A stretch of 64,000 bases of DNA, from contig CATNEN010000041.1 of assembly GCA_950097015.1 (NCBI GenBank), positions 2,914,001 through 2,978,000 of the forward strand, given 5' to 3'. The notes beneath the pieces were generated by a model. It did no database searches. It was not told the DNA's origin and saw only the letters and a program-made list of their open reading frames with translations. Source of the DNA: Macrostomum hystrix. Lineage: Eukaryota > Animalia > Platyhelminthes. A program made the translations under genes and the position numbers. Below are positions 32,901-56,624 of the stretch, in pieces (position 1 is the stretch's first letter; the number at the start of each line of letters is the position of its first letter).

Positions 32901-35900
32901 CCCACAGTACTCACAGCCCGCCTCTCGCACTTCACCATCATCACTTTCGTGTCCGAGTTAAACGGCCATTCGTGCAGACGAATGAATTCAGAGCGAAGTC
33001 CGCGAGCATCGAGCTGAGGATGGAGAAAGGGTATTCTCGAGCTGGCAATGACCTAACGAGCGGCTAAGGAGCGGAGGGCAATAACCTAGCGAGTTGCTGA
33101 GGGGAGGGCAAATGACCAACCGAGTTGCTGAGGAGGGGAGGGCAATGACCAACCGAGTTGCTGAGGAGGGGAGGGAAATGACCAACCGAGTTGCTGAGGA
33201 GGGGAGGGAAATGACCAACCGAGTTACTGAGGAGGGGAGGGCAAATGACCTAACGAGCGGCTAAGGAGCGGAGGGCAATGACCAACCGAGTTGCTGAGGA
33301 GGGGAGGGCAATGACCAACCGAGTTGCTGAGGAGGGGAGGGCAAATGACCTACCGAGTTACTGAGGAGAGGAGGGCAATGACCAACCGAGTTGCTGAGGA
33401 GTGGAGGGCAAATGACCTAACGAGCGGCTAAGTAGCGGAGGGCAATGACCAACCGAGTTACTGAGGAGGGGAGGGCAATGACCTACCGAGTTGCTGAGGA
33501 GGGGAGGGCAATGGCCTACCGAGTTGCTGAGGGAAGCGTATGTCCAACAATCGAGGGTCAAAATCATAATGCAAGAAGTAGATATGAGATACTGAGAGCA
33601 TTTTGTCAGCGGCAAGCAGACAGTCTTCATGCAGGCCCCACCTGTCCTCCAGCTAAAGCTGTCTCCAACGCACAGGTTCCTGGGCCGCATTGTTGCTGGG
33701 CAAACAAAGGGACTGATCCAGATCAGCCAGCTGAGAGTCCAGTGCACAGCGGGCTGGCTGGGAGCTGCCAGGACCCACCGCAAAGGTGGCTTGAAGCCTT
33801 CAGTGCGGTCTGTCTAAACATTGCTATCTATTATTGTAGAGAGAACCTGCACAATGCAATAAATTCTTGGCTAAAATCCTTATGACCCACGGAGATCCTT
33901 TGTTAAAAATGTTTTTAACTTTCTTCTGGCAACCGTTGAATTTCTGCAGTGGAGTTTCTGACAATGCGACACACTTGTGGCATTATTAAACCTGCGAAAT
34001 AATCATAATTATGATACTGCTCTATTGACATATGAGCAGGCAAGTCTGCTTTTAATGTGCCTTGTCAGTACATGGGTCTTTGTCAACGGGCCAGCCTCGC
34101 CCTGTCCAGACTCAAACTGTCAAGCATGAGCAAACTTAAACTGTACAGCATGAGCGGACACAAACTGTATAGCATGAGCGGACACAAACTGTATAGCATG
34201 GGCAGACTCACCTTGTCAAGCATGAGCAGACACAAACTGTACAGCATGAGAAAACTGAGAATGTCAAGAATGAACGGACACAAACCGTAAAGCATGAGCG
34301 GACACAAGCTGAATAGCATGAACGGATACAAGCCGCATAGCATGAGCGGACACAAGCCGAATAGCATGAGCGGACACAAACCCAAAAGCATAAGCAGACT
34401 CACCCTGCCAAGCATGAGCAGCAGAGCTGCCTCAGTCGGCTGTCCGAGCACCTGGCCATCGGGCGCCACCTCGGCGTCGTTGCAGGCGGCGCAGACGGCG
34501 CAAAGCCAGCGCAGCGCTGGAGTCGCGCTCGAAAGCGACAGCCGCAGCCGCTGCCCGCCACCGCTGCTGCCTCCGTCGTCAACCGCAAAGCTAAGTCCGT
34601 CAACGTCAGCGGCTAGACCATCGGAGGCTTCAATGCGAGCCACGGTCATCTCGTTCAGCGTGAGAGTGCCAGTCTTGTCGGACAACACCGCCGTCACGCA
34701 GCCCAGCGTCTCCACGGCCGGCAGCCGCTTCACCACGGCGTTCCGCCGGGCCATGCGCATGACGCCGATGGCCAGGGTGACCGTCACCACAATGGGCAGG
34801 CCCTCAGGAATAGCCGCCACCGCCAGGCTGACGCCAATCTGCAGAGTCTCCAGTAGCGGGCGGCCCTGCGCCAGGCCGATGACCACGATGCAGGCGATGA
34901 TGCAGAGGCTGCCGAGGCTAAGCTGTCTGCCCAGGCGGTCCATGCTGCGCTGCAGCGGCGTTCTTGGAGCTTCGGCCTCCTGCATCGCCCGGTAGACGTC
35001 GGCGAAAGCACTGTCACCGCCGGTGGCAACGACAAGGCCGCGGCCGAAGCCGGAGCGGACCAGGGTGCCTGTGAAGGCGCAGTTGGCGCGGCTGCTGAGC
35101 TCGCAGGAGGCCTCGCGAGGCTCCGACGGCAAAGGCGGCTGCAGAGACGATTTGGAACAGCCACTTGAGGAGTCGGCGATCAGCGAGGCCTTGTCAGAGC
35201 AGCCTGCTGCATCGGTGGGAACTGAGGCGGTCTTCAGCACTGGCTCAGTCTCGCCTGAGGGTCAAAGTGAGCATTTGTACTTAAGAATTGGAACTCTGGG
35301 ATCAAGGCAATGCCTTTCTCATATCTAAGTGTGCACTTGTACTTGAGAATTGGAACTCTGGCATCAAGGCAATGCCTTTCTCATATCTAAGTGTGCACTT
35401 GTACTTGAGAATTAGAACTCTGGCATCAAGGTAATGCCTTTCTCATATCTAAGTGTGCACTTGTACTTGAGAATTGGAACTCTGGCATCAAGGTAATGCC
35501 TTTCTCATATCTAAGTGTGCACTTGTACTTGAGAATTGGAACTCTGACATCAAGGTAATGCCTTTCTCAATACTAATGCTATCTAAGCCGGTCTGGCTCA
35601 CCCGTGAAGCTGGACTCGTCGATATGCAGGTCGGCGCACTCCACCAGGCGCAGGTCGGCTGGCACGCGGGAGCCGACGCTAAGCCTCACAAGATCGCCGG
35701 GAACGAGGTCCACGGCGTCCAGACTGCGCAGCTCGCCGCCGCGCACACACTCGCAGCGGTGCGGCAGCAGCCGCTTCAGTGCCGCCAGCGCCCGCTCGGA
35801 GCGCCACTCCTGCACGAAAGCCACGGAGACCACGATGACGATGGCCAGCGAGATGCTGACGGCGTTGTCAAGTTGGCGCATGCACAGACTGGCCAGGGCA

Positions 35901-36163
35901 GAGCATAGCAGCATGGCAATCATTGGGTCGCGGAACTGGCCGAGGTAGCGCTGCCACAGCGGCTCCGGCTGCGGCGCCGGCAGCTCGTTTGGTCCCAGCT
36001 GAAGCAGCCGGCGCTGCGCCTCCGCAAGGGACAAGCCGTCCGCCAAGCTGCTGCCCAGCTGCTCGGCCAAGGATGAAGCGCTTCGCCGACTGGCTTCTGG
36101 CAAGCTCAGCCGCTGCCAGGGGCGCTGCTTCGGCTGCTGCTGCTGCTGAGGCGACGATTCCAT
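29905..36163 (-). CDS. ATP2C1: Secretory pathway Ca2+/Mn2+-ATPase (SPCA/PMR1, P2A-type); exons 36163-35602, 35254-34404, 33013-32915, 32823-32299, 31252-30523, 30071-29905; ~977 aa
   Basis: [18 protein letters not shown], phosphorylation motif [33 protein letters not shown]-type M6 [38 protein letters not shown]. Exon lengths sum to 2934 nt with consistent phases. Strong start context gccgccATGG. Confidence 0.96.
30145..30520. repeat. Intronic 21-bp minisatellite (cctgaatcttagaatcttcaa) abutting the exon-5 donor of ATP2C1
   Basis: Tandem copies; 7-aa period in ORFs. Confidence 0.95.
31299..32235. repeat. Intronic nested repeat: three 104-bp units followed by a 30-bp array (gtttggaaggtgaggtgtctgccatcgggt)
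   Basis: ggcgtctctg at 31301, 31405, 31509; 30-bp unit ~21 copies. Confidence 0.93.
33045..33535. repeat. Intronic ~33-bp minisatellite (gagttgctgaggaggggagggcaatgaccaacc)
   Basis: Tandem copies with variants. Confidence 0.9.
34105..34420. repeat. Intronic ~30-bp degenerate repeat overlapping the ATP2C1 exon-2 donor
   Basis: agcatgagc recurs; second cagactcacc donor copy near 34203. Confidence 0.85.
35270..35575. repeat. Intronic 62-bp repeat, 5 copies
   Basis: gaattggaactctg at 35285, 35347, ... Confidence 0.93.
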
Positions 36164-39100
36164 GGCGGCTGTGGGAGTTTGAGGATTTCCAATCCTTAAC
36201 TAAGCTCATTTGTTTCAGACTTAGTCTGGCTTCTACGAAGGATGAACACTGCACAGCTATGTGGACGACGAGAAATTTTAGTCTTTGCTGAGTAGCATTG
36301 TTGCATAGTTGCTGATTGGCTAATAAAATGCAAGCAATCTGCATCACTTTTCTAACTTAGTCGAATAAATTAGTTTTGTTATTAGGATCAGGATTAGGAT
36401 TAGACATGCAAAAAGCTTAAAGTAGCTAAAGTCAAATAGGAATAAGCATCTAAAAAATCTGGAATAAGTTACATAGAAACTTTATCTTGAAGCATTTATA
36501 ATCGATGGTTATAAAATGAAAGTGTGTCATCACGAACAACACTTCTGTAGTAGCTCTTTGCCAAGCCCAAAAGTAAGCAGTCATAGTTTATTTTCTACAA
36601 TCAGCACACTCATTGCTATTAAACACATATAAAAACTTATTCATAGTAAGATGTTACAAATGTTTTGTAGGATAGGTATAATATTTCCCAGGAAATAATA
36701 AATGCTATAATTTAATATAAATTATCACTTAAAAACTATGATATATTCAATAGATTATAAGAAACATATAAAGGCTTAATTTTGTTAAATACCCAATCAA
36801 AGCTAAATCAAAAGCTATAAAAATAAAGATGTAGCTACCATTGAAAACTCACTATTATATATAAAGTGACAAAGCTGAATAATAAACTCTTGAGGCTAAA
36901 TTTAAAGAATTTTTGATCTTCAAATTCTAAAAAAATATATAGTTGTGTTTAGCCAATAGCCAATAGTATTATTGAATCTTCTTAACTATAATTGGGTATT
37001 CATGAAGCACTATTATAGCTAAAAAATTAAATATTTTAAGCATTTTAATGAGATATGTTCATAGAATTCCATATCATGACCTAACTAGCTAGCTAAATAT
37101 ATGCGAGCACTTAGCAACTCTAGCTAGGTGATCTTTCCATACCAGTGGTAAGTTCCATAAACAGTGTTTAAAGCTAAAGTTGAACAGAAATAAATTACAA
37201 AAAGCATATATTACTGTACAGTTGCTTAGCTTAAATACAAATAATAACACTTTCGCTTCAATATCTCGTGTCAAAGAGTTTGGGAATGTAGTTAAATGGA
37301 TTCGACATTACTATCCACCCATGCTAACTGACCACTAAATCAAATAACTAACGGCCAACTATTACTATTTTTATTCAAGGGATTTACTTGTAAAAAGACA
37401 AAGGGCAATATAGTGGTGGGTGCTACATGATATTTCACTTTACTAATTATGTAGCTCCCCAGAAGGGGCGGTAAGGAATATGAAATGTGAAAGGTGGATG
37501 GGAAAATGAACACAAGCTTCAAGCTGAAAGCCTGCAGCCTGATAAAGTAAAGTGATTAACGGAATTAAAGCTATAGGTAATATGCTGAACTTAAAGTTTG
37601 CAAAGTACAAGAGATGTGTAATATATCATCAATAAAATCGAATGGTATAGTATTTAAATGGATGCAAAAAATAATGACAACGGCCTATCGTTCTGCTAAC
37701 GCAATCAAGTATAATTAAGGTGACGCTAGCATATAATTGCTCTGTTTCGTATAAAAAAGTAAGTTTAAAAGAAGACAAACTTTAAAAACAAGAAAATTAA
37801 AGAAGAGCTAAATAAAATAGCTAAGATTTGTTTTTAAATATGCTAAGAATTTTAACTCTGCCAAAATCCGCCTTTTTATAACACAAACTTGTTTTACTAC
37901 GTAATTATATTGTCCGTTGCAATTTGAAGCCCTGCGCTAATGTGCTGTTAATTAGTAATTGTAATCAAATTTGTGATTTTTGGTAAATATGCATACATTT
38001 ATTACGTTTAAAACATGGGAAATATGTGCACTAAAGTCATATGTCCGTGTTGTAGTCGCATTATACAATAGCCTCTACAAAGGATTAATACTTAACTAGA
38101 CCACTTTAGGCTACTTAACTTATATACGTAATTGCTAGTGGTCCTCGAGCCTGTAATCTAGAATGCTGTTTGCAGGCAGAATACTTAATTTTAATCAATT
38201 GGTTTCTAGGAATTCTAGAAGCCTTGAGACAAGGACTTCTTTATTATTTGTTGCCAGTTGCCAGTTGCCACTTTAAAACGATTTGAAATGTAAGTTTTGC
38301 AATTTTACGAGCGTATTTCAGTTTAACCTGGCACTTTTCAATTTACAGTGTAAATATCAGAATTCCACTTATACCATGTGATGACACTGTGAAAACTAAA
38401 TATTCTTTCTGCCAATTCATTTGAAGAAAGACACAATCTGTAATCTGCAGTTGGGAAAAATCGCACAGGGATACACTGGCCTTCATAACTTTTTATGCCA
38501 AAATTGCACCTAAACTGTGAAGGATTGCATATCCTACTTAGCACACATTGTCGCAAAAAATGAGTACTTGTTAAAAACATTTTGTTTGCGTTGAGTGAGC
38601 AGCAGCGCTAAACAGTTAGGAATATTCAAGTGTTATTTATTCATAGCTTTATTGCAGAACATTTGCAGCACTTGAGAATCTGAATAGAGCAACAGAAAAA
38701 GAGACTTAAGGCGCTGGTTTCATAGAGACGCATTGGGTTTGGGGCCGCGGGCATGCAGTGTAGCACTGCAGCAGTAAGCAAAATATTAATCCATCTAATC
38801 ACAATATCTGTTTTATGGCGGATTAGCCGCTCCTGCCAACTCCGCTTTGATCAAAAGTTAACAAGAAAGCCACCCACAGGATAGTATAGAAGAAAACTAG
38901 ATTCGAAGCCTGGACTACAGTGACAGCAGTTAGGCCAATAAAGGTGCACAAATGATTGAGTTGATGAGATTCGCAGCGACTCAAAGCACAGAGGTGCGAG
39001 CACTGCCCAGTTATCATGGCAAAAACCTGCGCGTTTAAAACTGGCGAGTAGTATGGGCAGAGCATTGCAATAAAAAAAGTGAAGTAGTCCTCCACCGATT

Positions 39101-40205: not shown

Positions 40206-42237
40206 GCTCGGTTCAGGTCGCCGTCGGCAGTGACCAGGAGGTCCAGCAGGACGCTGTCCGACGGCTCCGGGCCGACGATGGCGCGGAATTCGCCAAGCTT
40301 CTCCTCAAAGTTGCCCCCAGGCGGGCTGGGCCAGAGCTGCTCTGAGTCCGAGCTGCTGCCGTCCAGGCTGCCGACCGACTCGGGCAACGTCAGGCGGTCA
40401 CGGAGGGCCTGGCTCAGCTGGCCCAGCTGCGGAGCGGTGGCGTTATGCCTGGCCACATGAGCACTGCCCAATTCACCTTAGAGATTGCCTGGCAACAGCA
40501 GCCTTCCCAAGGCCCTCCCACAGAAGCATGTCACTCTCACTCAGAAGAACCCGCCAAGGACTCACATCGTCCACGGACACGGCGTTGATGTTCCGCTGCA
40601 GGAAGTCGAAGGCGGAGTCCATGAGCGCCGTTTGCCCGGTCCGCTCGCCCAGCACCAGCAGCGGCACCGCCGTCTCGAAGCCGATCCGAGCCACCAGAGC
40701 GCTGGCGCAAATCTTTGACAGGCGCTCCAGCTCGAACCGGTCCGCCAGCAGCAACAGGTCCACCTGGCGGTTTGGGGTGGACACGGCCTCAGACACATTG
40801 GCTTCCAGTAGCCGTTACGTTTTAGAGCCCTGCACAATTTCCCTCTGCTCACATCCCTTCAACCTGCACCGCTAACTCGCCCCAATTACATCTTGCCTCA
40901 TCCACTCTGTCTCACCAGCCAGTCCGTGGAGGCGTCGTCCCCGACAGGCAGCACTCCGGTGTAGAGAAACTCGAGCAGGCGCTCAACCAGTGGGCCCTCG
41001 CAGTCGGGCAGCCGGAGGTGCTTCTCAAGCGCCTCGCACATGCCGGACTGCAGGACGCGCCGAATCCACGGGCAGCGGCCAGCCAAGACCAGCGAGTGGA
41101 CCCGGAAGCTGCGCTCGTCGCAGGTGGTCACGAGCAGGTCCGGCGCAGGCTGCAGTAGCTCGCCGCGCCACAGACGAGTCAGGCACAGCTGCAGAGGAAG
41201 GGCAGGTCAAGCGGGCCTGGATCGTCTCTGACCACGGACACACAAATACAGACACCTAAATATGACATAAGGGAGCCAAACTTGCCGTAGAGGCAAAAGG
41301 CACCCACCTGCAGCTCATTAGGCACCGAGGCAGCCGATTCGGCAGCGCCGGCGGTGACGGTGCTGGGTGGCTCTTTGGAGGCGTCCTCGAGCGACACCGC
41401 CGAGATGGAGGCTGCGGCCGCGTCAGCTTCGGAGGCGGGCGCAGCCGCGTCGGCAGCAGCGTCGCCGGCGGCGAAGTCGGGCGGCAGGATGGCGAGCTCG
41501 CGCAGCAGGCCGAGGGTCTCCTGGCAGCCGCGTGGCAGGCAGGCGGTCAGCCGGCGCCAGAACTCGGCCGCGGCCGGCTCGGCGCGGACTGAGCGCAGCA
41601 AGCGCACAGCGAGGCCGGCGCGCCTGGCCGCCTTCTTGGCCCTCTTCTCCCAGCGAGCGGAGATGCGGAAGTCACCGGCGCCGGCGCCGCCGCCCGGAGG
41701 CCGCCGATTGTCGAGGCCGGCCAGTTCGGCCAGCAGGTGGTCGAACAGCTCGGACAGTCGCTCGGGGCTGGCCTGGCGGTATTCAGAGCGCATCGACTCG
41801 AGCTGAGTGCGGAGGGTCGAGCACCTGGTTTGTGTTGAGGGGGAAAGTGAGCACTCACTTCTTAGCAGCTCAAGACTCAAGTCTCTAAGTTACAGACTAA
41901 AATAATCGCCATAGACTCACTTTTTGGGCGAGGACAGCAGCGCCCGCCAGTCTTTGAACTGGAGGACTCCGCCGCCACCCAGCAGGCCCTGCCGGCAGCC
42001 AGTGCTCAGCAGGTCGGCCAGCTGCAGGGCGCACTCGGGCAGGCCAGAGGCCAGCGGCTCCAGCCGGTCGAAGCACAGCTGGCAGAGCTCCGGCCGCCGC
42101 TCGGCCGGAACCGCTCGCATCGCCGAGTGCAGCCGGTGAAGCAGCTGAGCCTGTGACTCGGCCAGCCTGCCAGCCCGGTCACGGAACAGCTGCTGCACCC
42201 TGGCCCGCTCAGGCCCAGGCATCGACTCGTAAAGTGC

Positions 42238-42933
42238 TGAAATATTTTAGATTCGTCTCTGGTCTATCAATGTCTAGTTTAATGAGTATTCTTATTATCT
42301 TTACTAGTTGTCTTTGACAAGAGCCAATTGTACACGGCTATTTCTAAGTAATGAGGAGGCGTGGAAAATCGACTATCTTTTCCTGATGTTGCACTCACTT
42401 TCGGTCTTATACTCTCAATCGGATTATATTTTGTTGGTCTTACGGCAAACAGTTAAAAGATGACAACTCACTATAAATTATTACAATTATTACAATCACT
42501 GAGAGAAGGTAATTCCCAAGCACAAGTATTTGATTGTTACTCACGGATCCTGAGTCAGTAACCAAGATATGGAAAAGGGTTCAAGGTAAGATCTGGGTGA
42601 AGTTTCCAGGAGTCACAATTCCAATTTCAATAAGGTATTCTTAATTATCTGGATCTTGCATGGGTTAGCCAGGGATAGCAAAGGCTAGCGACTAATAGAT
42701 ATCGGATCTAGCTAGGAGATTGAATAGCAAGCGAAGAAGGAACGGGCGAGCGGGGGCCGTCTTACTTTCTCTCAGTGCAAGAACTTTTATACTCATCCGG
42801 CCAAAGGCTGCCATAGGGCAGGAGTCTTTAGGCTAATCCTAGAGCTCCTGCAAATGCATCCTCGCGCAGGAGAGCTGCATATTCTAATCGCGCCTAGATG
42901 TAAAAATCGCATAGTTTAAATTGTAACACTTCA
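42238..42933 (-). repeat. 3' LTR (696 bp)
   Basis: No differences from 50349-51044 found by eye; TATAAAA on minus strand at 42785-42791. Confidence 0.97.
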
Positions 42934-42948
42934 TTAGCCCTTTTTTAC
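42934..42948 (-). other. Polypurine tract
   Basis: Minus strand gtaaaaaagggctaa immediately precedes the 3' LTR. Confidence 0.7.
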
Positions 42949-43555
42949 AGAAGCGAAGGTCCTCCGAGCTCATAGATAACAATATGTTAGATATTATAGG
43001 AGGTTGATTAACATTTGTGGGGGTAAAAGATGACGGTATAAGAGGCATTCGGAAACAGATTTAAAGAAAATGATAAAGCGCGAAAAAAACTGTACAGTAT
43101 AAATAGTGCGAGTTTGAGAAATAAGAATTGAAAATGTCCTAACAATTGACAATTGATTTCGAAGTCTAGCTTTTGATAACACTTGTAGGAGGTATAAAAA
43201 TGTGAGATGGCGTGTAAAGGTTATATGCATAGTTGGTATAAGAATATGATAGAAAAACACGATCGATTAGGAGTGTCAAAACAAGTGGCATATACAAGAC
43301 CTTAGACAGGGTCAAGGAGGGTGCACAAAGGGAGTGGGGTAGAGATAAAGCGAAGCGCAGAGAAGTGCCATAGACTATGTGCGCGAGTAATGTACATGTC
43401 CAGTTAAGTTTATTGAGTTAGAAAGTAAAGGAAAGGAGAGGCTTGGATTAAAGCGACGAAAAGTGATATAAAGGGACAGAAAAACGTGGGGCTCTATGCG
43501 TGCAACATTTGACTTCTAGCGAGTTTCTAAAAGTTAAACTGTTTCTCAACTGGCA

Positions 43556-43834
43556 ATGCAAGACCAAATTTCAAATCTGCGCTGGCTTTTAACAGATCTC
43601 GGTGTTCAGGTCGAGCGTCTCGACAAGCGACTGCAGATCGTCGAGTGGCAGCTGATTAGCCTGTGGGCGCTGTTAGGCGCCTTCATCTTAGTCAGTCTGG
43701 TCGTGTGGGTGTGCATCTGCTGTGGCTGCAGATGTCGATATCCACGGCGAAATACCCATCATCCAGAGCAGCGGTCGGTTAGTCCGGCAGTTGCTCTAGA
43801 CGGTGCCGATTTCGCTGCGGGGTCGCTTTGTTGA
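43556..43834 (+). CDS. Antisense 92-aa membrane microprotein in the LTR element (leucine zipper - TM helix - Cys cluster - basic patch)
   Basis: ATG in gcaATG context; TATAAA at 43467-43472; heptad a/d positions I5, L8, L12, L15, V19, L22, L26, V29, L33, L36; TM about 33-54; CICCGCRC then RYPRR. Confidence 0.6.
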   Translation: MQDQISNLRWLLTDLGVQVERLDKRLQIVEWQLISLWALLGAFILVSLVVWVCICCGCRCRYPRRNTHHPEQRSVSPAVALDGADFAAGSLC

Positions 43835-44570
43835 CTGCACAGTATGATGTTAGCCCATTATGAACGTTAAAACGGCCCTTCTCAGGGCCACCACGTTGAA
43901 ATGAGGCTTCTGGTTCTACTTCGTGTCGGACACGAGAGATCGCAATTGCAGGAGTCGGGCAGAGAGACTTGATTGATGGGAGAGACGCTTGTGCCGCTGT
44001 CGGTGAAAACGCTAAGACAGTATGGGATGAAGTCGATAGCTGAATGAATGACAGCGTGTCAGTGTAGGCCACGGTGTCGGCTTCAGCGGTATTCGGTGAG
44101 ACTTCGGGTCATCAGGTTAGCCAATCGCCAGGTCATCAGAGTAGTTACACGGTCGAGCCTCAATGAGGCGAATGTGGAATAAAGGACAGAAAGAAAAGAT
44201 ATTGGAAAGGATGTTTAGAACAAGTGTAAGGAGAAGAGGTCTGTCTTCGAAATAGTCGTAGCTGAGTAACATATGTATGAGGAGGTAATAAAGGTAGCGA
44301 ATAAATATAGGTGAAGCCGCATGTCGAGTTTAGGTAATATATAAAATTATCTATAATTATGAAAAGAAATAGGATAAGCGAGAAACTAAATAATGTGTAC
44401 TAGAGAAGACGGATATTAGAGGTGTGGAAAAGTGATGATATTCTATATAAAGCATCAAGGGTGAAGAAGGGAATTAAATTATAACGAAATAGAAATGTGG
44501 GTAACGTATAAAGCAATGTTTACGTATTAAAGAATGCTGATCACTGGTCGAGTTTTTTGCGCAGACTTCA

Positions 44571-45680
44571 TCATTGTCTTTTCGTCATGATTTCTGATGT
44601 TTCACTCTGAGGTGTGAGTGAATTAATCAGGGCAAATTCTTCATTGCCGAGTGTGGCGATCGCCTTGGAGTAGTCAAACCGTAGTGGGATTCCAAGTGTT
44701 TTAAAGGTTTCTACTCCCAGGAGGAGGTCATAGTCTGGCAATGTGGAGTCCAATACAAAGGCGGTTATTGAATGTTCTTGTCGTCCGATCTCCAATTTAA
44801 GAGTAGTTTTCTGATTGAGTGAAAGCTGTTGTCCTCCTGCGCAAACTGCGCTTAAATTGGTGTTCTGTATTGGAGTGCCGAGTTTTCTTGCGAATTCAGA
44901 GGAAATGCAGGAGATCGAGGCGCCACTGTCAATGAGTGCTGTGCATTTGTAGCGCGTCTGTCGTGTGCCTTGGCACCGTAGCTGGATCATTGTTGCGGTG
45001 ATGGCATGTTTGATGGCGCAAGCGTAGGAAGCTGGCCACTGTGTGATAGGTGGAGGTGGTGGCTTTGGTCGTCTTCCTTGTGGCGGAACTAACGCTTCCA
45101 TTTGCAACTCCACAGGAGGTGATGGTGGAGGCAGTGGATATGTGCCAATCTTAGTATCGGACTGTGATGGTGGCGGTGGCGGTAGAGGCGGCGGTGTTGG
45201 CGGCGTTGGTTGAAGTTCCACGCTGATTCCAACGAACCGCTGAGCCAGCTTGGCCTCCTCGGCGACGAAGTTGATATCGACGTCGTGGCAGGACGGCTTC
45301 ACAATTAAGCCAACGTTGCGTCGACGAATTGACTTGGCCGAAGTGGCGGACTGCTGTAGTTCGATCACCGTAGTCTGATAAGTGCTCAACTGAGTCTCCA
45401 GTTCAGTAATAATTGATCGGAGTTCATTTACGATGGTCACATGCTCGCGTTCGATTTGATCCAACTGTTGCTGGTGGAGTAGTTCAGTTTCCTGGTTCTG
45501 GTTCTGCTGCTGCTGTTGGTGCTGCTGCTGAATAGATTGCTGGCAACAGTAATTGCTCGATAAGGTGGTCGATGAAGATTTCCTGGTCGCCTGTTCTTGC
45601 GGCTGCTTATCAAATAATAATCCGGAATCCTGCGTAGGACGTGTCGTGCGTATGTATGGACAAATTCGACCCGGTGTCGA
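44571..45680 (-). CDS. ORF2 of LTR element: poly-Q, coiled coil, Pro-rich linker, retropepsin-type aspartic protease
   Basis: ALIDSGASISCISSEFARKLG ... YDLLLGVETFKTLGI. The frame is open from 45680 (no ATG) and overlaps the gag end by ~70 nt in the +1 frame. Confidence 0.85.
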   Translation of the reverse strand, partial: STPGRICPYIRTTRPTQDSGLLFDKQPQEQATRKSSSTTLSSNYCCQQSIQQQHQQQQQNQNQETELLHQQQLDQIEREHVTIVNELRSIITELETQLSTYQTTVIELQQSATSAKSIRRRNVGLIVKPSCHDVDINFVAEEAKLAQRFVGISVELQPTPPTPPPLPPPPPSQSDTKIGTYPLPPPSPPVELQMEALVPPQGRRPKPPPPPITQWPASYACAIKHAITATMIQLRCQGTRQTRYKCTALIDSGASISCISSEFARKLGTPIQNTNLSAVCAGGQQLSLNQKTTLKLEIGRQEHSITAFVLDSTLPDYDLLLGVETFKTLGIPLRFDYSKAIATLGNEEFALINSLTPQSETSEIMTKRQ

Positions 45681-47652
45681 TTAGTTTCAGCACGCGGCAC
45701 TCAGCTGAGGACATGACGATTGCGGCGATATCTGGGCTGCAGGACTTGGTTGAAGTTGGCCGCTCTGTATGTTGCTCAGCGACTATGCGAACGTCGAAAT
45801 CGCCAACTCCGACGGAGACAGTCGATACAGGGGGAGACGGAGGCGAAGTTGGCGGTGGTGATGGCGGAGCTAACGGAGTCTGTCGCGGCTCGGTCTGAGT
45901 CGTGCTATTGCTGACAACAAGCTTAACAGTGGCCACGCCGTTGGTTGTGTGTTCGGTCGGAAGTGATACCAATCGGAGTGTGTTAATCTGAGCAGGTTTA
46001 GGGTCTTGATTGTGCAGTAAGTTTTCTAACTGTCTAGAATCGCCAGTGAACCTATAGATTCGTCCGTCATCCGGGGTTGGGTCATCCGTAGACTGAAGTG
46101 TCATAAGCGACGCGGGGTGGTCGCGGTGATGCCATTCAGACTCTTGTTGATCCTCATAGTGTGGCACTGTGATCGTTCGGATATTGTGTCGCATGTGTTG
46201 ATTGTTGTGTCGCCAGGGCTGTGTATAAGGCGGTGAATAACGTGGTTGGCTTTGTGCCATGCGTTTTCGGCAGACATCGATGATGTGGCCAGGGTGTCTG
46301 CAATAGCTGCAACCCCTGTCTGGCTGCCACTGTGGACTGCGATACTGGTTACCATGGCCTTGTCCCTGGGGTGTGTAACCTTGAAATTTTTGTCGGATGG
46401 CCGCTCCAGGTAAGTTTGCCGTCTCATAAGTGTTCATCGGCTGGCGATTTTGGTGTCGATATCTGTCATCCTGCTGAGTTGTAGGTCCACTTCCTGCCCA
46501 ACACCGTGCGGATGTGTGACCGATTTTACCACAAGTGTAGCAGGTCTTGACTTCCGGACGTGTGTGCTGCGACTTCCTGGCAGTGCGATTCAATGTAGCC
46601 AATAACTGTTCATTAGACTCTTGGGTGGTATTCAAGAGAGCATTAAGTCGTTCAGTCAATTTTTTAATGTCAGACTCGTCCGAGTCCAGAGTGGAGTCGC
46701 GAGTCTGTTCAATTCTCAAGGCCTTGTTGAGCAGTTCTGCCTCAGAGGAAATGTTGCGCTTAAGCAGGTCTGACCGCAGGTAAGGCAGTGAATTGTTGAT
46801 GACTGTAGCGACAAAGGTGGTGGTAAAGTCTCTGTCGCGTTGTTGCATTGCTCCCAAGTTCGTAGGAGGGGTTTCGGGTTCAGTACCCTCGGCATATATA
46901 GGTGCTATAGCCGGTAAGGTAGCACGCATTTTCCGGCGTAAATCAGTAAAGTACTGTAGGAATGGTTCGCCTGGCTGTTGTTTACGAGATGTTGCATTAT
47001 GTAATGTTAGTGTCGAGCCGATAGAAATCTCTCGTAGGCGTTCCGTGAGAGCTCGAATAGTATCGGGGAACGAATTTTGAGTCTGGGCATCGAGCCTTCC
47101 AAATTCGAGCTTGAGTAAGTCGTCCAGTAGTCGTGGAAATATGCGAATTTTGGTGGTATTCGATAATCCAAAGGTTCGGGCAGCCAGGTCGAATTCGGCT
47201 ACAAAAGTCGGGAAGTCATGCATCTGATTGATGCCTTTGACACAATTGCGGACCTCAGCGAGAACCGTCGCTGACACCGGTTGTTCAGCGCCGGTGCCCA
47301 TAGCTCGGTTCATTGTGTCAGTAAATTGTCGTAAAGCTGCTGCGGCTTCTTCCATGTTTGGGAGTTGGACGTTTTGATCGTCGTTATCTTGGTCGACGGA
47401 AGCGAGTGGTGGACCTTGTAATGTACTGTCTCTGTATGACGGTAAGTCTCCAAAAGTGACGGAAGTTGATGCGCCTGTAACAGTTCTATTCTGAGGTGTG
47501 GACAAGACGGAGGGGTTTGTGCCGTTTGGATTGTTCTCAACTATAGAATCAGGGTCTATGGACTGATTCGGTATTTGAGATTGCTGTGGGTCCTCCAATT
47601 TCAATGATTGATAATTTCTTCCAGAGCGAGTATAACTAGGCAATAAATTCAT
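45610..47652 (-). CDS. gag: Gag (680 aa) of LTR element
   Basis: Two CX2CX4HX4C knuckles (CYTCGKIGHTSARC, CSYCRHPGHIIDVC), capsid-like RKQQPGEPFLQYFTDLRRK segment, terminal LIDTGS motif. Confidence 0.92.
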   Translation of the reverse strand: MNLLPSYTRSGRNYQSLKLEDPQQSQIPNQSIDPDSIVENNPNGTNPSVLSTPQNRTVTGASTSVTFGDLPSYRDSTLQGPPLASVDQDNDDQNVQLPNMEEAAAALRQFTDTMNRAMGTGAEQPVSATVLAEVRNCVKGINQMHDFPTFVAEFDLAARTFGLSNTTKIRIFPRLLDDLLKLEFGRLDAQTQNSFPDTIRALTERLREISIGSTLTLHNATSRKQQPGEPFLQYFTDLRRKMRATLPAIAPIYAEGTEPETPPTNLGAMQQRDRDFTTTFVATVINNSLPYLRSDLLKRNISSEAELLNKALRIEQTRDSTLDSDESDIKKLTERLNALLNTTQESNEQLLATLNRTARKSQHTRPEVKTCYTCGKIGHTSARCWAGSGPTTQQDDRYRHQNRQPMNTYETANLPGAAIRQKFQGYTPQGQGHGNQYRSPQWQPDRGCSYCRHPGHIIDVCRKRMAQSQPRYSPPYTQPWRHNNQHMRHNIRTITVPHYEDQQESEWHHRDHPASLMTLQSTDDPTPDDGRIYRFTGDSRQLENLLHNQDPKPAQINTLRLVSLPTEHTTNGVATVKLVVSNSTTQTEPRQTPLAPPSPPPTSPPSPPVSTVSVGVGDFDVRIVAEQHTERPTSTKSCSPDIAAIVMSSAECRVLKLIDTGSNLSIHTHDTSYAGFRIII

Positions 47653-50333
47653 GTACTTTTAAACTTTCTTGTGGAGTTGAATGCAAAACAAGATTCGAAT
47701 AAGGCGGAGTAAGAACTTGATAGTGAAGTAAGTATTGGTTACTGCGAGTAGTAAGAAGAGGGTTTGTCGCAACAGGCAACGGCTTTCGGGCACGTGGTCC
47801 GGAGTTCTGGCAATTTTGGGGATTCAGAATAAGTAATGCGGCTTTTATTTAAACGTGTTCATCTGCGTCTGAGTGGGGAATGTGTTCTCCGTTCAGATTG
47901 AATCAGCACGGCGAATAATTAATTAACAAATAGGTACCACGTGGTTTTGGAGTCAGGCAAAGAATGCAAAGTGTAATAGCGAGGAGGGATTTTTGTAGGA
48001 ATATTTATATCATTAGACGCTTTCTAGATTACTGCTTTTATTTTGTTTTCTAATATTGCTATTTTTATTTGCTTTTTGATTTTGTGATTTTTTAGTTTTT
48101 TGGTTATATATATATATTCACGTTATAAACGAAGACAAGTTAGATGGTAATATATTTTTGTTATTTTTTTGAGTTTTATATGTTTTTATTCTTTTTACCA
48201 CTTTTATAGAAAGTATAAGTATTAAGACAGGTATACACATGTCGTTACGTATGAAAAGATGTATTTACAAGAGGATATGTTCAAAGGAAAGCAATATATA
48301 TAATTTGTGTAGTGCGGAACTTCATTATACATCCTATTAGATAAATGTTCGTTTGTGAACGAGGAAATATATATAGAAACGTTGGCGTGTGTAAGCATAG
48401 AGAGAGATAGTTAAATAATTATATACAGCTTAAGTAGGTAATGTTATATATGATATGAAAATGTATATATTTTTGTGCTTTTTTATAGAATTTTGTAAGC
48501 ATATCAAGTATATTTACAGCGTTAGATGTGTCTGGTTAAAAGTGGTTGAAGAAGCAGACGAAGAATGAGAAATGATAAAGTTAGTACTGTAGAAACGGTA
48601 TAAAAAAGAGTAATGAGATGAATGATAGTAGAGGGAAGAGTAAGGATGGCTTTCCGAGGAGGATTACCAGTGATGCCGGCTAGAATGGGACCCCAACCGA
48701 GCTCACCTAGGAGAAGAATAAATCGTTCAAGAGAACTAGGACAGAGGGAGAGATAACGCCAGTATGTGTAGAAGTTGAGTAGAGCACATGATTTGTCCAT
48801 TTTGGAGAGAAAGTGGAAGAAGAGTGAGACGAGAAATATAGATAAAAAGAGAAATGTGATCAGAAGGCAGTCACGGGGCCGCGATCAAACTAGGTGTATC
48901 TGGCAGTTAGAGGTTCCGGCAGCGAGGAAGAGTGGAGTGGCCGGCGTCAAGCAGAATGGCACCAGTAGATCTTCAGCAGACACGGCGAAGGATGCAGCAA
49001 GTAGGTCGAAGTGCAGAGGAGCGCAGAGTGACTGAGTTGAATTAGGTTTGAGAGTATTGACTGTGAATAGAGGGTGAAGGCTTTTTATAGTGACGGGAAA
49101 TTGCGGTTGACCGCCAGAAAATGAAATTTTTGATTAAATGCGAAGGAGGCTGAAGCGGTTGATTGGATTTTGTGATGGCTCTTCGAGAAAGTGTGGCTGA
49201 CAGCTAGGAGATAGGAGTAGAGTTCACATGCAAAGAAGGCTAAAGCAGTTAATTGGATTTTGGAGATCGATCTACGAGAAAGTGAGGCTGACAGCTAGGA
49301 AATAAGATTTGTGCTCACATGAAGAGAAATCTGGGCAAGTAATTGGATTTTTGCGAAAATAAATGAGAAAGTGAGGCTGACAGCTAGGAAATGAGATCTG
49401 GGCAAGTAATTGGATTTTTGCGAAAATAAATGAGAAAAAGGCTTTTTTGCCTAACGCAGCGTCGAGCCTGGTAATTAATTTGGGCGAAAAAGTTTTCCAA
49501 AAAAGTTTTTTGTTGATTGATGAGTGGAGGCACTGGGGAAATAAGCGCGCGTGTTTGTATGCATGGACCACACGACGGAAAGCCGCGTCGGGAGAACGAA
49601 GTTTGATTAAAGAAAAAAAAACGCTGTCCCAGCGGAAAAGCGAGGATAATGCGTAGCTATAGGATTTCGTGTTAATTTGAGAAAGTTTTTTGTTGCTAAA
49701 AGTTCCATATGTAAAAGCGTCTAAGATAAAATATTAGTCAGAATTGTCTTTTTAGAAGACAACCTGCAGGATTCTCTACGTTGGGGGAGTAGAGAAATCT
49801 TCGTTTAGAAGACTTGCCGTCTGATTTAACAATTGACTTGAGGAATTTCCAACAAATTTCAACAATAGGGAGGCTATACACTTGCAGAGTTGGAGGGAAA
49901 TGGTTTGAGTTGAGAAGTTATTTAGAGAGTGTTGAATACATTCAACGAAATCTAAACCTAACTTGACGACTCGGAAAGGTGTTGAAGAAAGAGGTTTTGC
50001 CGACTATGACTTATTAAAAGTCTTGAGAGGATTTTAATTTATATCTGCGCGCCAACACCTCAAGCTTTATTTTCTCCATTTAAACTGATTTATCGATAAT
50101 CGACTTTCTAGTCGACTGACTGACTGTGGTTTAAGAGGGCCCTCGAATTTCATTGAGGACGCAGTGAAACACGGGAGAACACAAGATTGTTTCGAACTCG
50201 ACAAAATTTAATATTAATTGCAGAAAGGGATTGCCAGATTACTCCCCCCACGCCCCTCAGCCATGCCTTAAGCGATTAGCCCATAATGAATTTAGTCATG
50301 GTGTAGAAATAAGTGAGTGCATGGAGGAAAAGA

Positions 50334-50347
50334 CGGTCAGGGAACCA
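50334..50347 (-). other. Primer-binding site complementary to tRNA-Glu 3' end
   Basis: Plus strand CGGTCAGGGAACCA matches the eukaryotic tRNA-Glu(CTC) 3' end including CCA (recalled sequence), 1 nt from the 5' LTR. Confidence 0.85.
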
Positions 50348-50348
50348 G

Positions 50349-51044
50349 TGAAATATTTTAGATTCGTCTCTGGTCTATCAATGTCTAGTTTAATGAGTAT
50401 TCTTATTATCTTTACTAGTTGTCTTTGACAAGAGCCAATTGTACACGGCTATTTCTAAGTAATGAGGAGGCGTGGAAAATCGACTATCTTTTCCTGATGT
50501 TGCACTCACTTTCGGTCTTATACTCTCAATCGGATTATATTTTGTTGGTCTTACGGCAAACAGTTAAAAGATGACAACTCACTATAAATTATTACAATTA
50601 TTACAATCACTGAGAGAAGGTAATTCCCAAGCACAAGTATTTGATTGTTACTCACGGATCCTGAGTCAGTAACCAAGATATGGAAAAGGGTTCAAGGTAA
50701 GATCTGGGTGAAGTTTCCAGGAGTCACAATTCCAATTTCAATAAGGTATTCTTAATTATCTGGATCTTGCATGGGTTAGCCAGGGATAGCAAAGGCTAGC
50801 GACTAATAGATATCGGATCTAGCTAGGAGATTGAATAGCAAGCGAAGAAGGAACGGGCGAGCGGGGGCCGTCTTACTTTCTCTCAGTGCAAGAACTTTTA
50901 TACTCATCCGGCCAAAGGCTGCCATAGGGCAGGAGTCTTTAGGCTAATCCTAGAGCTCCTGCAAATGCATCCTCGCGCAGGAGAGCTGCATATTCTAATC
51001 GCGCCTAGATGTAAAAATCGCATAGTTTAAATTGTAACACTTCA
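50349..51044 (-). repeat. 5' LTR (696 bp)
   Basis: See 3' LTR; TATAAAA on minus strand at 50896-50902. Confidence 0.97.
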
Positions 51045-51169
51045 GTGCTGCGCATAGCAGCAGGCGGGCCGCTGCTGCCAGGCAGTCGCTCAGGAAGGCC
51101 TCCAGCTGGCTGGCAAGGCGGCCGGGCTCTGCCGCAAGTGCGCAGGGGTCCCGCAGCTCCTGTGGGTTT

Positions 51170-51889: not shown

Positions 51890-54800
51890 ACAGCCAGTCC
51901 CATGACCAGGCCTGTGATAACAGCCAGTCCCATGACCAGGCCTGTGAGAACAGCCAGTCCCATGACCAGCCCTGTGATAACAGCCAGTCCCATGACCAGC
52001 CCAGCCGCAGTCCCAGCCCCAGTTCCAGCCCCAGCCTCAGTCCCAGTCCCAGCCGCAGTCCCAGCCCCAGTCCCAGCCCCAGCCTCAGTTCCAGCCCCAG
52101 TTCCAGCCCCAGCCTCAGGCCCAGCCCCAGCCTCAGTACAAGCCCCAGCCGCAGTCCCAGCCCCAGCCTCAGTCCCAGCCCCAGCCTCAGTCCCAGTCCC
52201 AGCCTCAGTCCCAGCCGCAGTCCCAGCCCCAGCCCCAGCCCCAGCCTCAGTCCCGGCCCCAGCCTCAGTCCCAGTCCCAGCCGCAGTCCCAGCCCCAGCC
52301 TCAGTCCCAGCCCCAGTTCCAGTCCCAGCCTCAGTTCGAGCCCCAGCCCAGCCGCAGTCCCAGCCCCAGCCTCAGTCCCAGCCCAAGCCTCAGTCCCAGC
52401 CCCAGTTCCAGTCCCAGCCGCAGTCCTTGTCCCAGCCCCAGCCTCAGTCCCAGCCCCAGCCTCAGTCCCAGCCGCAGTCCCAGCCCCAGCCTCAGTCCCA
52501 GCTCCAGCCTCAGTCCCAGCCCCAGTTCCAGTCCCAGCCGCAGTCCCAGCCCCAGCCTCAGTCCCAGCCCCAGCCTCAGTCCCAGCCCCAGCCTCAGTTC
52601 CAGCCCCAGCCTCAGTCCCAGCCCCAGCCTCAGTCCCAGCCTCAGCTCCAGCCCCAGCCTCAGTCCCAGCCCCAGCCTCAGTCCCAGCCTCAGTCCCAGC
52701 CCCAGCCTCAGTCCCAGCCCCAGCCTCAGTTCCAGCTCCAGCCTCAGTCCCAGCCGCAGTCCCAGCCCCAGCCTCAGTTCCAGCCCCAGCCTCAGTCCCA
52801 GTCCCAGCCGCAGTCCCAGGCTCAGTTCCAGCCCCAGCCTCAGTCCCAGCCCCAGCCTCAGTCCCAGCCCCAGTTCCAGTCCCAGCCCCAGCCTCAGTCC
52901 CAGCCCCAGTCCCAGTTCCAGTCCCAGCCTCAGTTCCAGCCCCAGCCTCAGTCCCAGTCCCAGCCGCAGTCCCAGCCTCAGTCCCAGTCTCAGTTCCAGC
53001 ACCAGCCTCAGTTCCAGTCCCAGCCTCAGTCCCAGCCTCAGTCCCAGCCCCAGTCCCAGCCGCAGTCCTAGTTCCAGCCCCAGCCGCAGTCCCAGTTCCA
53101 GCCCCAGCCGCAGTCCCAGTCCCAGTCCCAGCCCCAGCCTCAGTCCCAGTCCCAGCCTCAACTCCAGCCCCAGCCTCAGTCCCAGCCCCAGCCTCAGTCC
53201 CAGCCTCAGTCCCAGCCTCAGTCCCAGCCCCAGCCTCAGTCCCAGCCCCAGCCTCAGTTCCAGCCCCAGTTCCAGTCCCAGCCGCAGTCCCAGGCTCAGT
53301 TCCAGCCCCAGCCCCAGCCTCAGTCCCAGCCCCAGCCTCAGTCCCAGCCCCAGTTCCAGTCCCAGCCGCAGTCCCAGCCCCAGCCTCAGTCCCAGCCCCA
53401 GCCTCAGTCCCAGTTCCAGTCCCAGCCTCAGTTCCAGCCCCAGCCTCAGTCCCAGTCCCAGCCGCAGTCCCAGCCTCAGTCCCAGTCTCAGTTCCAGCCC
53501 CAGCCTCAGTTCCAGTCCCAGCCTCAGTCCCAGCCTCAGTCACAGCCCCAGCCTCAGTCCCAGCCGCAGTCCTAGTTCCAGCCCCAGCCGCAGTCCCAGT
53601 TCCAGCCCCAGCCGCAGTCCCAGTCCCAGTCCCAGCCCCAGCCGCAGTCCCAGTCCCAGCCTCAACTCCAGCCCCAGCCTCAGTCCCAGCCCCAGCCTCA
53701 GTCCCAGCCTCAGTCCCAGCCTCAGTCCCAGCCCCAGCCTCAGTCCCAGCCCCAGCCTCAGTTCCAGCCCCAGTTCCAGTCCCAGCCGCAGTCCCAGGCT
53801 CAGTTCCAGCCCCTGCCCCAGCCTCAGTCCCAGCCCCAGTCCCAGCCCCAGTTGCAGTTCCAGTCCCAGCCGCAGTCCCAGCCCCAGCCTCAGTCCCAGC
53901 CCCAGCCTCAGTCCCAGTTCCAGTCCCAGCCTCAGTTCCAGCCCCAGCCTCAGTCCCAGTCCCAGCCGCAGTCCCAGCCTCAGTCCCAGTCTCAGTTCCA
54001 GCCCCAGCCTCAGTTCCAGTCCCAGCCTCAGTCCCAGCCTCAGTCCCAGCCTCAGTCCCAGCCCCAGCCTCAGTCCCAGCCGCAGTCCTTGTTCCAGCCC
54101 CAGCCGCAGTCCCAGTCCCAGCCCCAGCCGCAGCTCCAGCCCCAGCCTCAGTCCCAGCCCCAGCCTCAGTCCAAGCCTCAGTCCCAGCCCCAGCCTCAGT
54201 CCCAGCCCCAGCCTCAGTTCCAGCTCCAGCCTCAGTCCCAGACACAGTCTCAGCCCCAGCCTCAGTTCCAGCCCCAGCCTCAGTCCCAGTCCCAGCCGCA
54301 GTCCCAGGCTCAGTTCCAGCCCCTGCCCCAGCCTCAGTCCCAGCCCCAGCCCCAGTTCCAGTCCCAGCCGCAGTCCCAGCCCCAGCCTCAGTCCCAGCCC
54401 CAGCCTCAGTCCCAGTTCCAGTCCCAGCCTCAGTTCCAGCCCCAGCCTCAGTCCCAGTCCCAGCCTCAGTCCCAGTCTCAGTTCCAGCCCCAGCCTCAGT
54501 TCCAGTCCCAGCCTCAGTCCCAGCCTCAGTCCCAGCCCCAGCCTCAGTCCCAGCCGCAGTCCCAGTTCCAGCCCCAGGCTCAGTTCCAGCCCCAGCCCCA
54601 GCCGCAGTCCCAGTCCCAGACGCAGTCCCAGCCTCAGTCCCAGCCCCAGCCTCAGTCCCAGCCCCAGCCTCAGTTCCAGCTCCAGCCTCAGTCCCAGCCC
54701 CAGCCTCAGTTCCAGCCCCAGCCTCAGTCCCAGTCCCAGCCGCAGTCCCAGGCTCAGTTCCAGCCCCAGCCCCAGCCTCAGTCACAGCCCCAGCCCCAGT

Positions 54801-55605
54801 TCCAGTCCCAGCCGCAGTCCCAGCCCCAGCCTCAGTTCCAGCCCCAGTTCCAGTCCCAGCCGCAGTCCCAGGCTCAGTTCCAGCCCCTGCCCCAGCCTCA
54901 GTCCCAGCCCCAGCCTCAGTCCCAGCCCCAGTTCCAGTCCCAGCCCCAGCCTCAGTCCCAGCCCCAGCCTCAGTCCCAGTTCCAGTCCCAGCCCCAGCCT
55001 CAGTCCCAGTCCCAGCCGCAGTCCCAGCCTCAGTCCCAGTCTCAGTTCCAGCCCCAGCCTCAGTTCCAGTCCCAGCCTCAGTCCCAGCCTCAGTCCCAGC
55101 CTCAGTCCCAGCCCCAGCCTCAGTCCCAGCCCCAGCCTCAGTTCCAGCTCCAGCCTCAGTCCCAGCCGCAGTCCCAGCCCCAGCCTCAGTTCCAGCCCCA
55201 GCCTCAGTCCCAGTCCCAGCCGCAGTCCCAGGCTCAGTTCCAGCCCCAGCCCCAGCCTCAGTCCCAGTCCCAGCCGCAGTCCCAGGCTCAGTTCCAGCCC
55301 CTGCCCCAGCCTCAGTCCCAGCCCCAGCCTCAGTCCCAGCCCCAGTTCCAGTCCCAGCCGCAGTCCCAGCCCCAGCCTCAGTCCCAGCCCCAGCCTCAGT
55401 CCCAGTTCCAGTCCCAGCCTCAGTTCCAGCCCCAGCCTCAGTCCCAGTCCCAGCCTCAGTCCCAGTCTCAGTTCCAGCCCCAGCCTCAGTTCCAGTCCCA
55501 GCCTCAGTCCCAGCCTCAGTCCCAGCCCCAGCCGCAGTCCCAGTTCCAGCCCCAGGCTCAGTTCCAGCCCCAGCCCCAGCCGCAGTCCCAGTCCCAGCCG
55601 CAGTC
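51890..55605. repeat. 3.7-kb intronic hexamer satellite (cagccc/cagtcc/cagttc/cagcct) with ~500-bp higher-order structure
   Basis: Fills the intron between BTB-gene exons; the long stop-free ORFs are repeat translations. Confidence 0.96.
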
Positions 55606-56624
55606 AGACCTTGCTAATCTGCAGGGAGCCGAACTGAAAGCGCAGTTTGCGCGGCACCTGCCGGCCGGACTTTTTCTCGCAGACGAACTTGGCTGGCGCG
55701 GACGCCTCCCGGTCGGCGCTGGCGAAGATGGCAGCGAATTTGGCGCGGCCGCGCACCACCTCCGGGCCAGCCTCCTCCAGGTCTAGCTGAGTCAGCTCGA
55801 ACAGCCGGCCCAGCTCGGATTCGGCCGGCGAAATCGCAGCGCCACCGGTGACTTTGCTGTCAGCGGAAGGCGGAAACCATTGCACGGACCAGCCAGAGGC
55901 AGACTCGCGGAAGCTCACGCGCCAGTCCGGGTCCCTCAGGTGCCTGTCGGTGCGGAGGCTTCAGCTGCAGTTTCCTTGGGCAAACTAAACATAATTCTAG
56001 TTGGACGAAGCAAGAAAAATTCAAGCGATTGTTGATTTAAAAAATTCAGAGGCTCTTGAGCATTGGCAATGATGCAACAGATTTGCACATCTGGTCCCAG
56101 ATTTTTTTTGTTCCTTTGACATCACTAGAAAATATAGACTTACTCAAAATGTTGATGGCCACTTTTTGCTTCAGTGCTTACAAATTCTTCCTTGAATTTA
56201 AATTTTGTTATCTGCAAAATAAAAAATGCTTGTTTAATGCCTCTCTGACTATATTGACAAAGTAAGATGCTCAAAGCACAGTTTTGAACTTACTTCCCAA
56301 AGACCATCCAATTGTTTGATGAATTCTTGAAACTTTTTATTACTCATTTGGTTGCTGAAAATACAATGAATATTGGTAAGCTATCAATAAAACACAAAGG
56401 AAAAGTATTAGTAAAGGAAAAGCTCATATTTTTCTGCCTTATAGACATGATAATTAAAATCATACAAGTATTTTTTACTCAGAAAACTATTAGTCTGTCT
56501 AGAGGATATGATGCTACAAAAATACTGAGCTGCAAAAACCAATATGGAATATGATTGGCCTACACTTAAAATTACAGTTGTTCTAAATGTAAATTAATAT
56601 GCTGAAAATTTATTTGCTACAGCA

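Follow-up and report, generated by a model that had tools for sequence, protein, structure and literature searches.

In a 64,000-nucleotide stretch of the genome of the free-living flatworm Macrostomum hystrix (GenBank assembly GCA_950097015.1, contig CATNEN010000041.1, positions 2,914,001 to 2,978,000 of the forward strand; henceforth referred to as the window, with positions counted from its first base), a long terminal repeat (LTR) retrotransposon that has gag and protease but no other replication enzymes carries an open reading frame (ORF) of 92 amino acids (henceforth ORF92) on the strand opposite to its genes, close to its 3' LTR. Judged by its predicted product, ORF92 may be a real orphan accessory gene for a small, oligomeric and probably palmitoylated membrane protein with an outer N-terminus and an inner C-terminus (N-out/C-in), a reading to which we give a probability of roughly 0.4. 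The pattern of features in the predicted protein exceeds what is expected by chance; the length of the ORF and the TATAAA motif upstream of it do not. The initial annotation of this DNA had proposed an ATG-initiated ORF of 92 amino acids, and this was confirmed at the coordinates listed here; the left bound given at that time (43467) is the first base of the TATAAA motif.

43556..43834, plus strand: ORF92, ATG reading frame of 279 bp and 92 amino acids, stop included
43467..43472, plus strand: TATAAA, 89 nt 5' of the ORF92 ATG
starts at 43496, plus strand: upstream ORF of 7 codons, in frame with ORF92
about 43600..44150, no strand: GC-richer island (GC 0.51-0.58), overlapping ORF92 in part

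A purine stands at -3 of the ORF92 ATG, and no other start lies between this ATG and the upstream stop. The translation contains every protein feature that had been proposed for it, namely an unbroken zipper from I5 to L36, a membrane helix, the cluster CICCGCRC and the basic motif RYPRR. In the zipper, isoleucine, leucine or valine occupies all ten consecutive a/d positions (residues 5, 8, 12, 15, 19, 22, 26, 29, 33 and 36), with I/L/V at the a positions, Leu at four of the five d positions and an unbroken 3-4 spacing; the heptad run comes to 13 a/d positions when M1, L40 and F43 are counted. It is followed by a predicted membrane helix at about residues 37-56 (best 19-residue Kyte-Doolittle mean 2.78), by the cysteine cluster at residues 53-60 (five Cys in eight residues) and by RYPRR at residues 61-65, with four Arg falling within residues 59-65. 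As read from the sequence, the order of these features follows ordinary membrane-protein rules, with a Trp at the start of the helix and Cys and Arg directly after it, and net charge amounts to about +4 on its C-terminal side compared to about +1 on its N-terminal side. An AlphaFold2 model made without an alignment places residues 2-61 in one helix, with a predicted local distance difference test score (pLDDT) of 82-95 over residues 1-60, and leaves the polar tail (residues 66-92) disordered; the modelled helix fits the view that ORF92 could encode a membrane protein and is no proof of it.

Both shuffled DNA and natural open frames indicated that the succession of zipper, membrane helix, cysteines and basic residues is not only real, as had been claimed, but also statistically unusual. 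In 6,000 shuffles of the GC island, which amounted to 5.1 Mb and gave 25,024 open frames of at least 60 amino acids, a heptad run of at least 10 arose in one frame and a membrane score of at least 2.78 likewise in one frame, while even a weaker pair of features (heptad run of at least 8 with membrane score of at least 2.5) was found in none of the 25,024; in a separate local test the combination of zipper and membrane helix was also found in 0 of 300 shuffles per region. The natural control consisted of 830 open frames from about 129 kb of Macrostomum DNA (the window and 65 kb from three M. lignano loci), among which the only frames to equal the ORF92 pattern were those over tandem repeats, with repeat periods of 3, 21, 24 or 42 nt. 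Tandem Repeats Finder (TRF), run at a minimum score of 30, reported no tandem repeat in the ORF92 region.

The element that carries ORF92 has 8807 bp and lies on the minus strand, with the following parts.

42238..51044, minus strand: whole LTR retrotransposon, 8807 bp, with gag and protease and without reverse transcriptase, RNase H and integrase
42234..42237, minus strand: target-site duplication GCAC, 3' side
42238..42933, minus strand: 3' LTR, 696 bp, with TG..CA ends
42938..42946, minus strand: polypurine-tract-like run just upstream of the 3' LTR, read from the sequence
42947..44570, minus strand: 3' internal region in the pol/env position, no sense-strand coding signal; ORF92 is on the opposite strand
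44571..45464, minus strand: protease ORF, 297 amino acids, open throughout, with a coiled-coil-like N-terminus, a proline-rich stretch and a retropepsin domain
45610..47652, minus strand: gag ORF, 680 amino acids, open throughout, with a pair of CCHC knuckles and, close to the C-terminal end, a short retropepsin-like motif
47653..50348, minus strand: unusually long AT-rich leader (2.7 kb) from the 5' LTR to gag; it contains a 91-nt tandem repeat (49138-49397) and two chance ORFs (92 and 99 amino acids)
50331..50347, minus strand: primer-binding-site-like stretch that begins with TGG one base after the 5' LTR, read from the sequence
50349..51044, minus strand: 5' LTR, 696 bp, 100% identical to the 3' LTR
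51045..51048, minus strand: target-site duplication GCAC, 5' side

With its paired LTRs, TG..CA termini, target-site duplication and gag and protease genes, the carrier is a non-autonomous LTR retrotransposon. The protease domain was recognised by PF13975 (2.9e-9) and PF00077 (3.5e-5), both above the gathering threshold, whereas the CCHC knuckle of gag scored a sub-threshold 18.1 bits in Pfam and the two CCHC motifs were identified by reading the sequence. The gag and protease ORFs contain neither an internal stop nor a frameshift, and they lie in different frames, which may be their normal arrangement. Outside these two genes, 20 open frames of at least 46 amino acids (16 sense and 4 antisense) gave no Pfam signal for reverse transcriptase, RNase H or integrase, and at E values up to 1 they returned two weak, unrelated matches only; since these enzymes are wholly absent rather than broken, we regard the element as non-autonomous. 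This agrees with the earlier placement of ORF92 antisense in the pol/env position of such an element: the start of ORF92 is 623 nt inward from the boundary of the 3' LTR, within the 1.6 kb between protease and 3' LTR, and thus on the opposite strand in the interval from the last sense gene to the 3' LTR, which is where antisense accessory genes lie. We also considered a remnant of pol or env in 42934-44573 and rejected it, as no open frame on either strand matched Pfam at E values up to 1. The open frames of the 2.7-kb leader gave no protein-family signal, gag had no relative in the homology search or in the viral and metagenome contig scans, and the window contains no tRNA gene to which the primer-binding-site-like stretch could be compared. 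A proline-rich stretch with a retropepsin-like Asp motif occurs twice on the minus strand of the element, cut off at the end of gag (45610-45700) and with a complete domain in the protease ORF (44571-45464), which suggests an internal duplication or a recombinant origin of the element.

We compared ORF92 to other small genes of LTR elements and retroviruses. Antisense genes near the 3' LTR include HBZ of human T-cell leukaemia virus type 1 (HTLV-1), which has a leucine zipper, and ASP of human immunodeficiency virus type 1 (HIV-1), which is small, hydrophobic, cysteine-rich and membrane-associated. ORF92 resembles these two in its antisense position near a 3' LTR and in having a zipper together with hydrophobic and Cys-rich parts, but no search revealed a sequence relation to either of them. 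It is not a basic leucine zipper (bZIP) protein of the HBZ type, because only 4 residues precede the zipper and leave no room for a basic DNA-binding region, and no bZIP family appeared in the Pfam output for ORF92. An antisense ORF between pol and the 3' LTR is well established in other LTR elements (PMC11963269). In plant elements of the Retand type such ORFs mostly exceed 600 bp, show conservation from family to family and code for TRP28 or other DNA-related domains; the paper mentions the antisense genes of HTLV as well (PMC11963269). The Retand ORFs are like ORF92 in that they are found on the strand opposite to gag-pol, in the interval that separates the 3' LTR from the last sense gene, and in that some of their carriers are non-autonomous (PMC11963269), whereas ORF92 has only 279 bp, is predicted to encode a membrane protein, contains no Pfam domain and belongs to an animal host. 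By position, ORF92 is most like the Retand antisense ORFs and the antisense genes of some retroviruses.

By content, the closest analogues are the small extra ORFs with transmembrane helices and coiled coils in LTR elements of bdelloid rotifers. These ORF3s, described in Vesta4 and Vesta6c, have 210-230 amino acids, lie in sense orientation, occur in several families and are transcribed; they contain transmembrane helices, cysteines and coiled coils without clear homology, and their authors caution that transmembrane and coiled-coil features do not prove an env function and are not specific to env (PMC5408684). ORF92 shares with them the position of a short extra ORF downstream of pol in an invertebrate LTR element and the transmembrane, cysteine and coiled-coil content without clear homology, whereas it has 92 amino acids, is antisense and has been seen once. 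By sequence, ORF92 is a member of none of the Retand, retroviral antisense or rotifer ORF3 groups. The best match of ORF92 to any family was TMIE (PF16038), at 20.9 bits against a gathering threshold of 27, with a TMIE chain in the PDB at E = 0.28: the helix of ORF92, together with the CC and the R-x-R-x-P-R-like motif behind it, aligns with residues 23-54 of TMIE, but the match covers the hydrophobic and basic stretch only, stays below the Pfam threshold and concerns a protein that has no N-terminal zipper.

If ORF92 is a gene, a plus-strand transcript would start in or just inside the 3' LTR, and its product would insert into the membrane as a single-pass protein with the 36-residue N-terminal zipper outside or in the lumen and the C-terminus in the cytosol, a topology that we propose from the charge balance around the helix. 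The zipper would drive the formation of parallel oligomers, the juxtamembrane cysteines would be S-acylated and the Arg cluster would bind acidic lipids and so hold the protein at the inner leaflet, such that the product could organise membranes as a small oligomer or serve as a pore-like accessory factor, rather than be a self-sufficient fusogen. We are more hesitant about a further-reaching reading, which we consider rather doubtful: that ORF92 represents a lineage-specific antisense gene for a small, zipper-anchored, acylated membrane protein beside the 3' LTR that a non-autonomous gag-protease derivative still transmits, and which would be the flatworm-retrotransposon, membrane-protein counterpart of the antisense genes in deltaretroviruses, lentiviruses and plant Retand elements.

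Several observations weigh against ORF92 being a gene. When the local 1.6 kb or the GC island was shuffled with dinucleotides preserved, 18% of the shuffles contained at least one ATG ORF of at least 92 amino acids, so the length of ORF92 is non-significant. The TATAAA motif was found where it had been reported to lie, upstream of the ATG, yet the hexamer occurs 10 times on the plus strand of the element; it is therefore non-significant and no evidence of a promoter, and the idea that ORF92 has an antisense promoter of its own, for which one TATAAA in an AT-rich element was the sole basis, finds no support. Similarly, the GC-richer patch does exist within the AT-rich 3' internal region (GC is 0.26-0.40 on each side of it), but it is not coextensive with ORF92: it begins about 45 nt inside the ORF and ends about 300 nt past its stop, and hence ORF92 is no explanation of the island. 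Codon usage of ORF92 scored negative against both a host-exon table and a gag-plus-protease table. Its codon-position periodicity (0.093 per codon) was no higher than that of 29% of chance open frames and fell below that of every 92-codon chunk of gag (0.108-0.232) and protease (0.137-0.191), although at 92 codons this is a weak test. That the frame is intact says nothing about selection, since two identical LTRs indicate an insertion too recent for decay to have occurred. Searches returned zero matches to ORF92 in a HMMER scan of 1.84 billion representatives, in a word-indexed search and in scans of viral and metagenome contigs, and no Pfam family above threshold; only one copy of the ORF92 region was seen. 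The collections searched appear to contain almost no Macrostomum sequence beyond the annotated M. lignano proteome, so that blank results from them carry little weight on whether the region is conserved among Macrostomum species, as illustrated by the search with the IFT88 gene of the window, in which a single Macrostomum match was followed directly by one at 62% identity. Other comparisons gave nothing significant among PDB sequences, a best E of 3 for the AlphaFold2 model against the viral folds of BFVD and none significant against PDB folds; exact-protein look-ups were blank for ORF92, gag and two versions of the protease ORF, and no second copy of the element was found by blastn, tblastx and tblastn elsewhere in the window or in the three M. 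lignano loci. ORF92 showed no similarity to gag, and the idea that it arose by inverted duplication of the coiled coil with which the protease ORF starts was rejected (BLASTP E = 10).

Much of this would be expected if ORF92 were an untranslated accident of a G- and T-rich antisense strand, its pattern resulting from local duplications and composition and not from selection, and we regard this as a serious possibility, albeit at less than even odds. ORFs of this length are to be expected, as the two in the non-coding leader also illustrate, a plus strand with G at 0.30 and T at 0.27 favours codons for Leu, Val, Cys, Trp and Gly, and the absence of a codon-level coding signal and of homologues in the searches made accords with such an origin. 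In addition, ORF92 was singled out among about 420 open frames of the window because it looked most like a protein, and is thus subject to a look-elsewhere effect, and Macrostomum tandem repeats can combine membrane-like scores with heptad runs as long as 37. The DNA of the zipper itself shows significant self-similarity at a lag of 18 nt (0.41 compared to 0.25 expected; 0.37 at 21 nt), which hints at a micro-duplication in a minisatellite-prone genome and counts against a gene. However, the 18-nt signal stems from a short W-x-L-type duplication at the junction of zipper and helix and cannot be the source of the heptads, because an 18-nt lag cannot itself give a 7-residue period. As for a decayed 21-nt minisatellite as that source, we rejected it given the blank TRF result and 21-nt matches that fall mainly on Leu and Val codons and not in long nucleotide runs, a layout that a genuine zipper would show likewise; it is retained, unproven, within the chance explanation. 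Also against chance is that composition-preserving shuffles almost never yielded either the zipper or the membrane helix and never both, and that the helix is followed by clusters of Cys and then Arg in the canonical order.

An accessory gene would also be mimicked by a relic, that is, by the C-terminal remainder of a formerly larger gene for a membrane glycoprotein, env-like or host-derived, that was inverted and is now non-functional, with an incidental ATG. A membrane-proximal coiled coil, an anchor and an acylated tail make up the last 60-90 residues of many type I glycoproteins, which is the layout of ORF92; moreover, the frame opens just 6 codons 5' of the ATG, the GC island runs past ORF92 as if a larger foreign block had been inserted, and the element is clearly rearranged, as it is without pol enzymes and repeats the proline-rich and protease-like pattern. 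We nonetheless consider a relic improbable, given that neither strand of 42934-44573 gave a Pfam match at E values up to 1 and neither sequence nor fold searches gave a homologue of ORF92, that the env genes of known elements are sense-oriented, so an inversion must be assumed, and that the GC content at third codon positions of ORF92 (0.58) is near that of the element's genes (0.48) and far from that of the host exons in the window (0.76-0.85), which argues against a freshly captured host exon. Far less probable still, and in our view very improbable, is that ORF92 is a self-sufficient fusogen of viral type, either FAST-like or a C-terminal module of class I. In its favour there is only a generic layout: a small protein with one membrane helix, clustered Cys and clustered basic residues. 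The kinship to both kinds of fusogen put forward in the initial annotation was not borne out by Pfam, PDB sequences, BFVD folds or PDB folds, none of which returned a named fusogen. Reovirus FAST proteins are small, cross the membrane once in N-out/C-in orientation and have basic residues clustered behind the helix, and ORF92 is like them in its 92 amino acids, its one predicted helix and its four Arg; however, its residue 2 is Gln, so it has neither a myristoylation glycine nor an N-myristoylation site, its 36-residue N-terminal part is an amphipathic zipper without a hydrophobic patch or fusion peptide, and no FAST protein was among the BFVD matches. With the C-terminus of class I fusion glycoproteins it shares the order of heptad repeat, anchor and Cys-rich tail, whereas it has no signal peptide, receptor-binding part or fusion peptide, and in place of the two heptad regions needed for a six-helix bundle it has a single one, which starts at residue 5 with no N-terminal hydrophobic segment before it. 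The carrier, furthermore, is without reverse transcriptase and integrase. The analogy to small infectivity ORFs of insect mdg1/412-type elements was likewise off target, as the host is a Macrostomum flatworm, identified by the IFT88 gene described below.

Should the accessory-gene reading of ORF92 be true, antisense accessory genes would extend beyond complex retroviruses and a few plant lineages, and an element stripped of its replication enzymes could still carry a gene for a membrane protein, whose use to a dependent element would then become a question. If ORF92 is not real, it would serve as a calibration case in which the non-coding DNA of a minisatellite-rich genome mimics textbook protein grammar, and layout alone would not equal function. 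Surveys of LTR retrotransposons in M. lignano start from reverse transcriptase (PMC12801592), and families that are without this enzyme are therefore uncatalogued, together with their cargo.

With regard to RNA structure in the region, no part of the window matched Rfam. The GC island had a folding z-score of -4.1 on the plus strand and -2.0 on the sense strand (20 shuffles each), and the longest inverted repeat, an imperfect 37-nt hairpin with 70% complementarity and a 5-nt loop, is located at 43742-43820 on the plus strand, inside the 3' end of ORF92; these results are suggestive at most of a structured RNA element in the GC island.

Elsewhere in the window, the IFT88 gene (20248-22931, plus strand) is present as two long open exons of 633 and 252 amino acids. 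The 633-amino-acid exon (20248-22146) has 97% amino acid identity to M. lignano BOX15_Mlig014944g2, the next best match being at 62%, and the coding DNA is 87.5% identical at the nucleotide level to three M. lignano contigs that carry the gene, with flanks that cannot be aligned, which points to a Macrostomum species other than M. lignano or to a diverged homeologous copy. A green alga as host, considered because PDB entry 8bd7 is the sole source of an IFT88 structure, was rejected on account of the 97% match. Exons of a P-type cation ATPase (30296-35240, minus strand; Cation_ATPase_C at 6.6e-42 and E1-E2_ATPase at 4.5e-27) are separated by introns filled with tandem repeats. AT-rich blocks at 18000-20000, 36000-39000 and 56000-58600 (GC 0.28-0.39) lie between GC-rich genic DNA, contain no long ORFs and do not resemble the element; intergenic DNA or old repeats that have decayed may account for them. 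Minisatellites are dense across the window, with 45 TRF rows in 64 kb and periods of 13-104 nt, many at 95% identity or more, and several of them (examples are at 18-1124, 8660-9354, 11788-12464, 14267-14983, 23293-24404 and 28176-28906) make long spurious ORFs on both strands. A 443-amino-acid ORF over a 24-nt tandem repeat (5451-6779, plus strand) matched Pfam Cornifin (SPRR) at 6.1e-27, most likely as an artefact of the proline-rich, low-complexity product of the repeat. Adjoining the 5' LTR of the element is an array of about 200 copies of an 18-nt unit (51996-55605, 3.6 kb, GC about 0.69), which gives open frames of 1259 amino acids on the plus strand and 1151 on the minus strand, neither of them an exact product on record.

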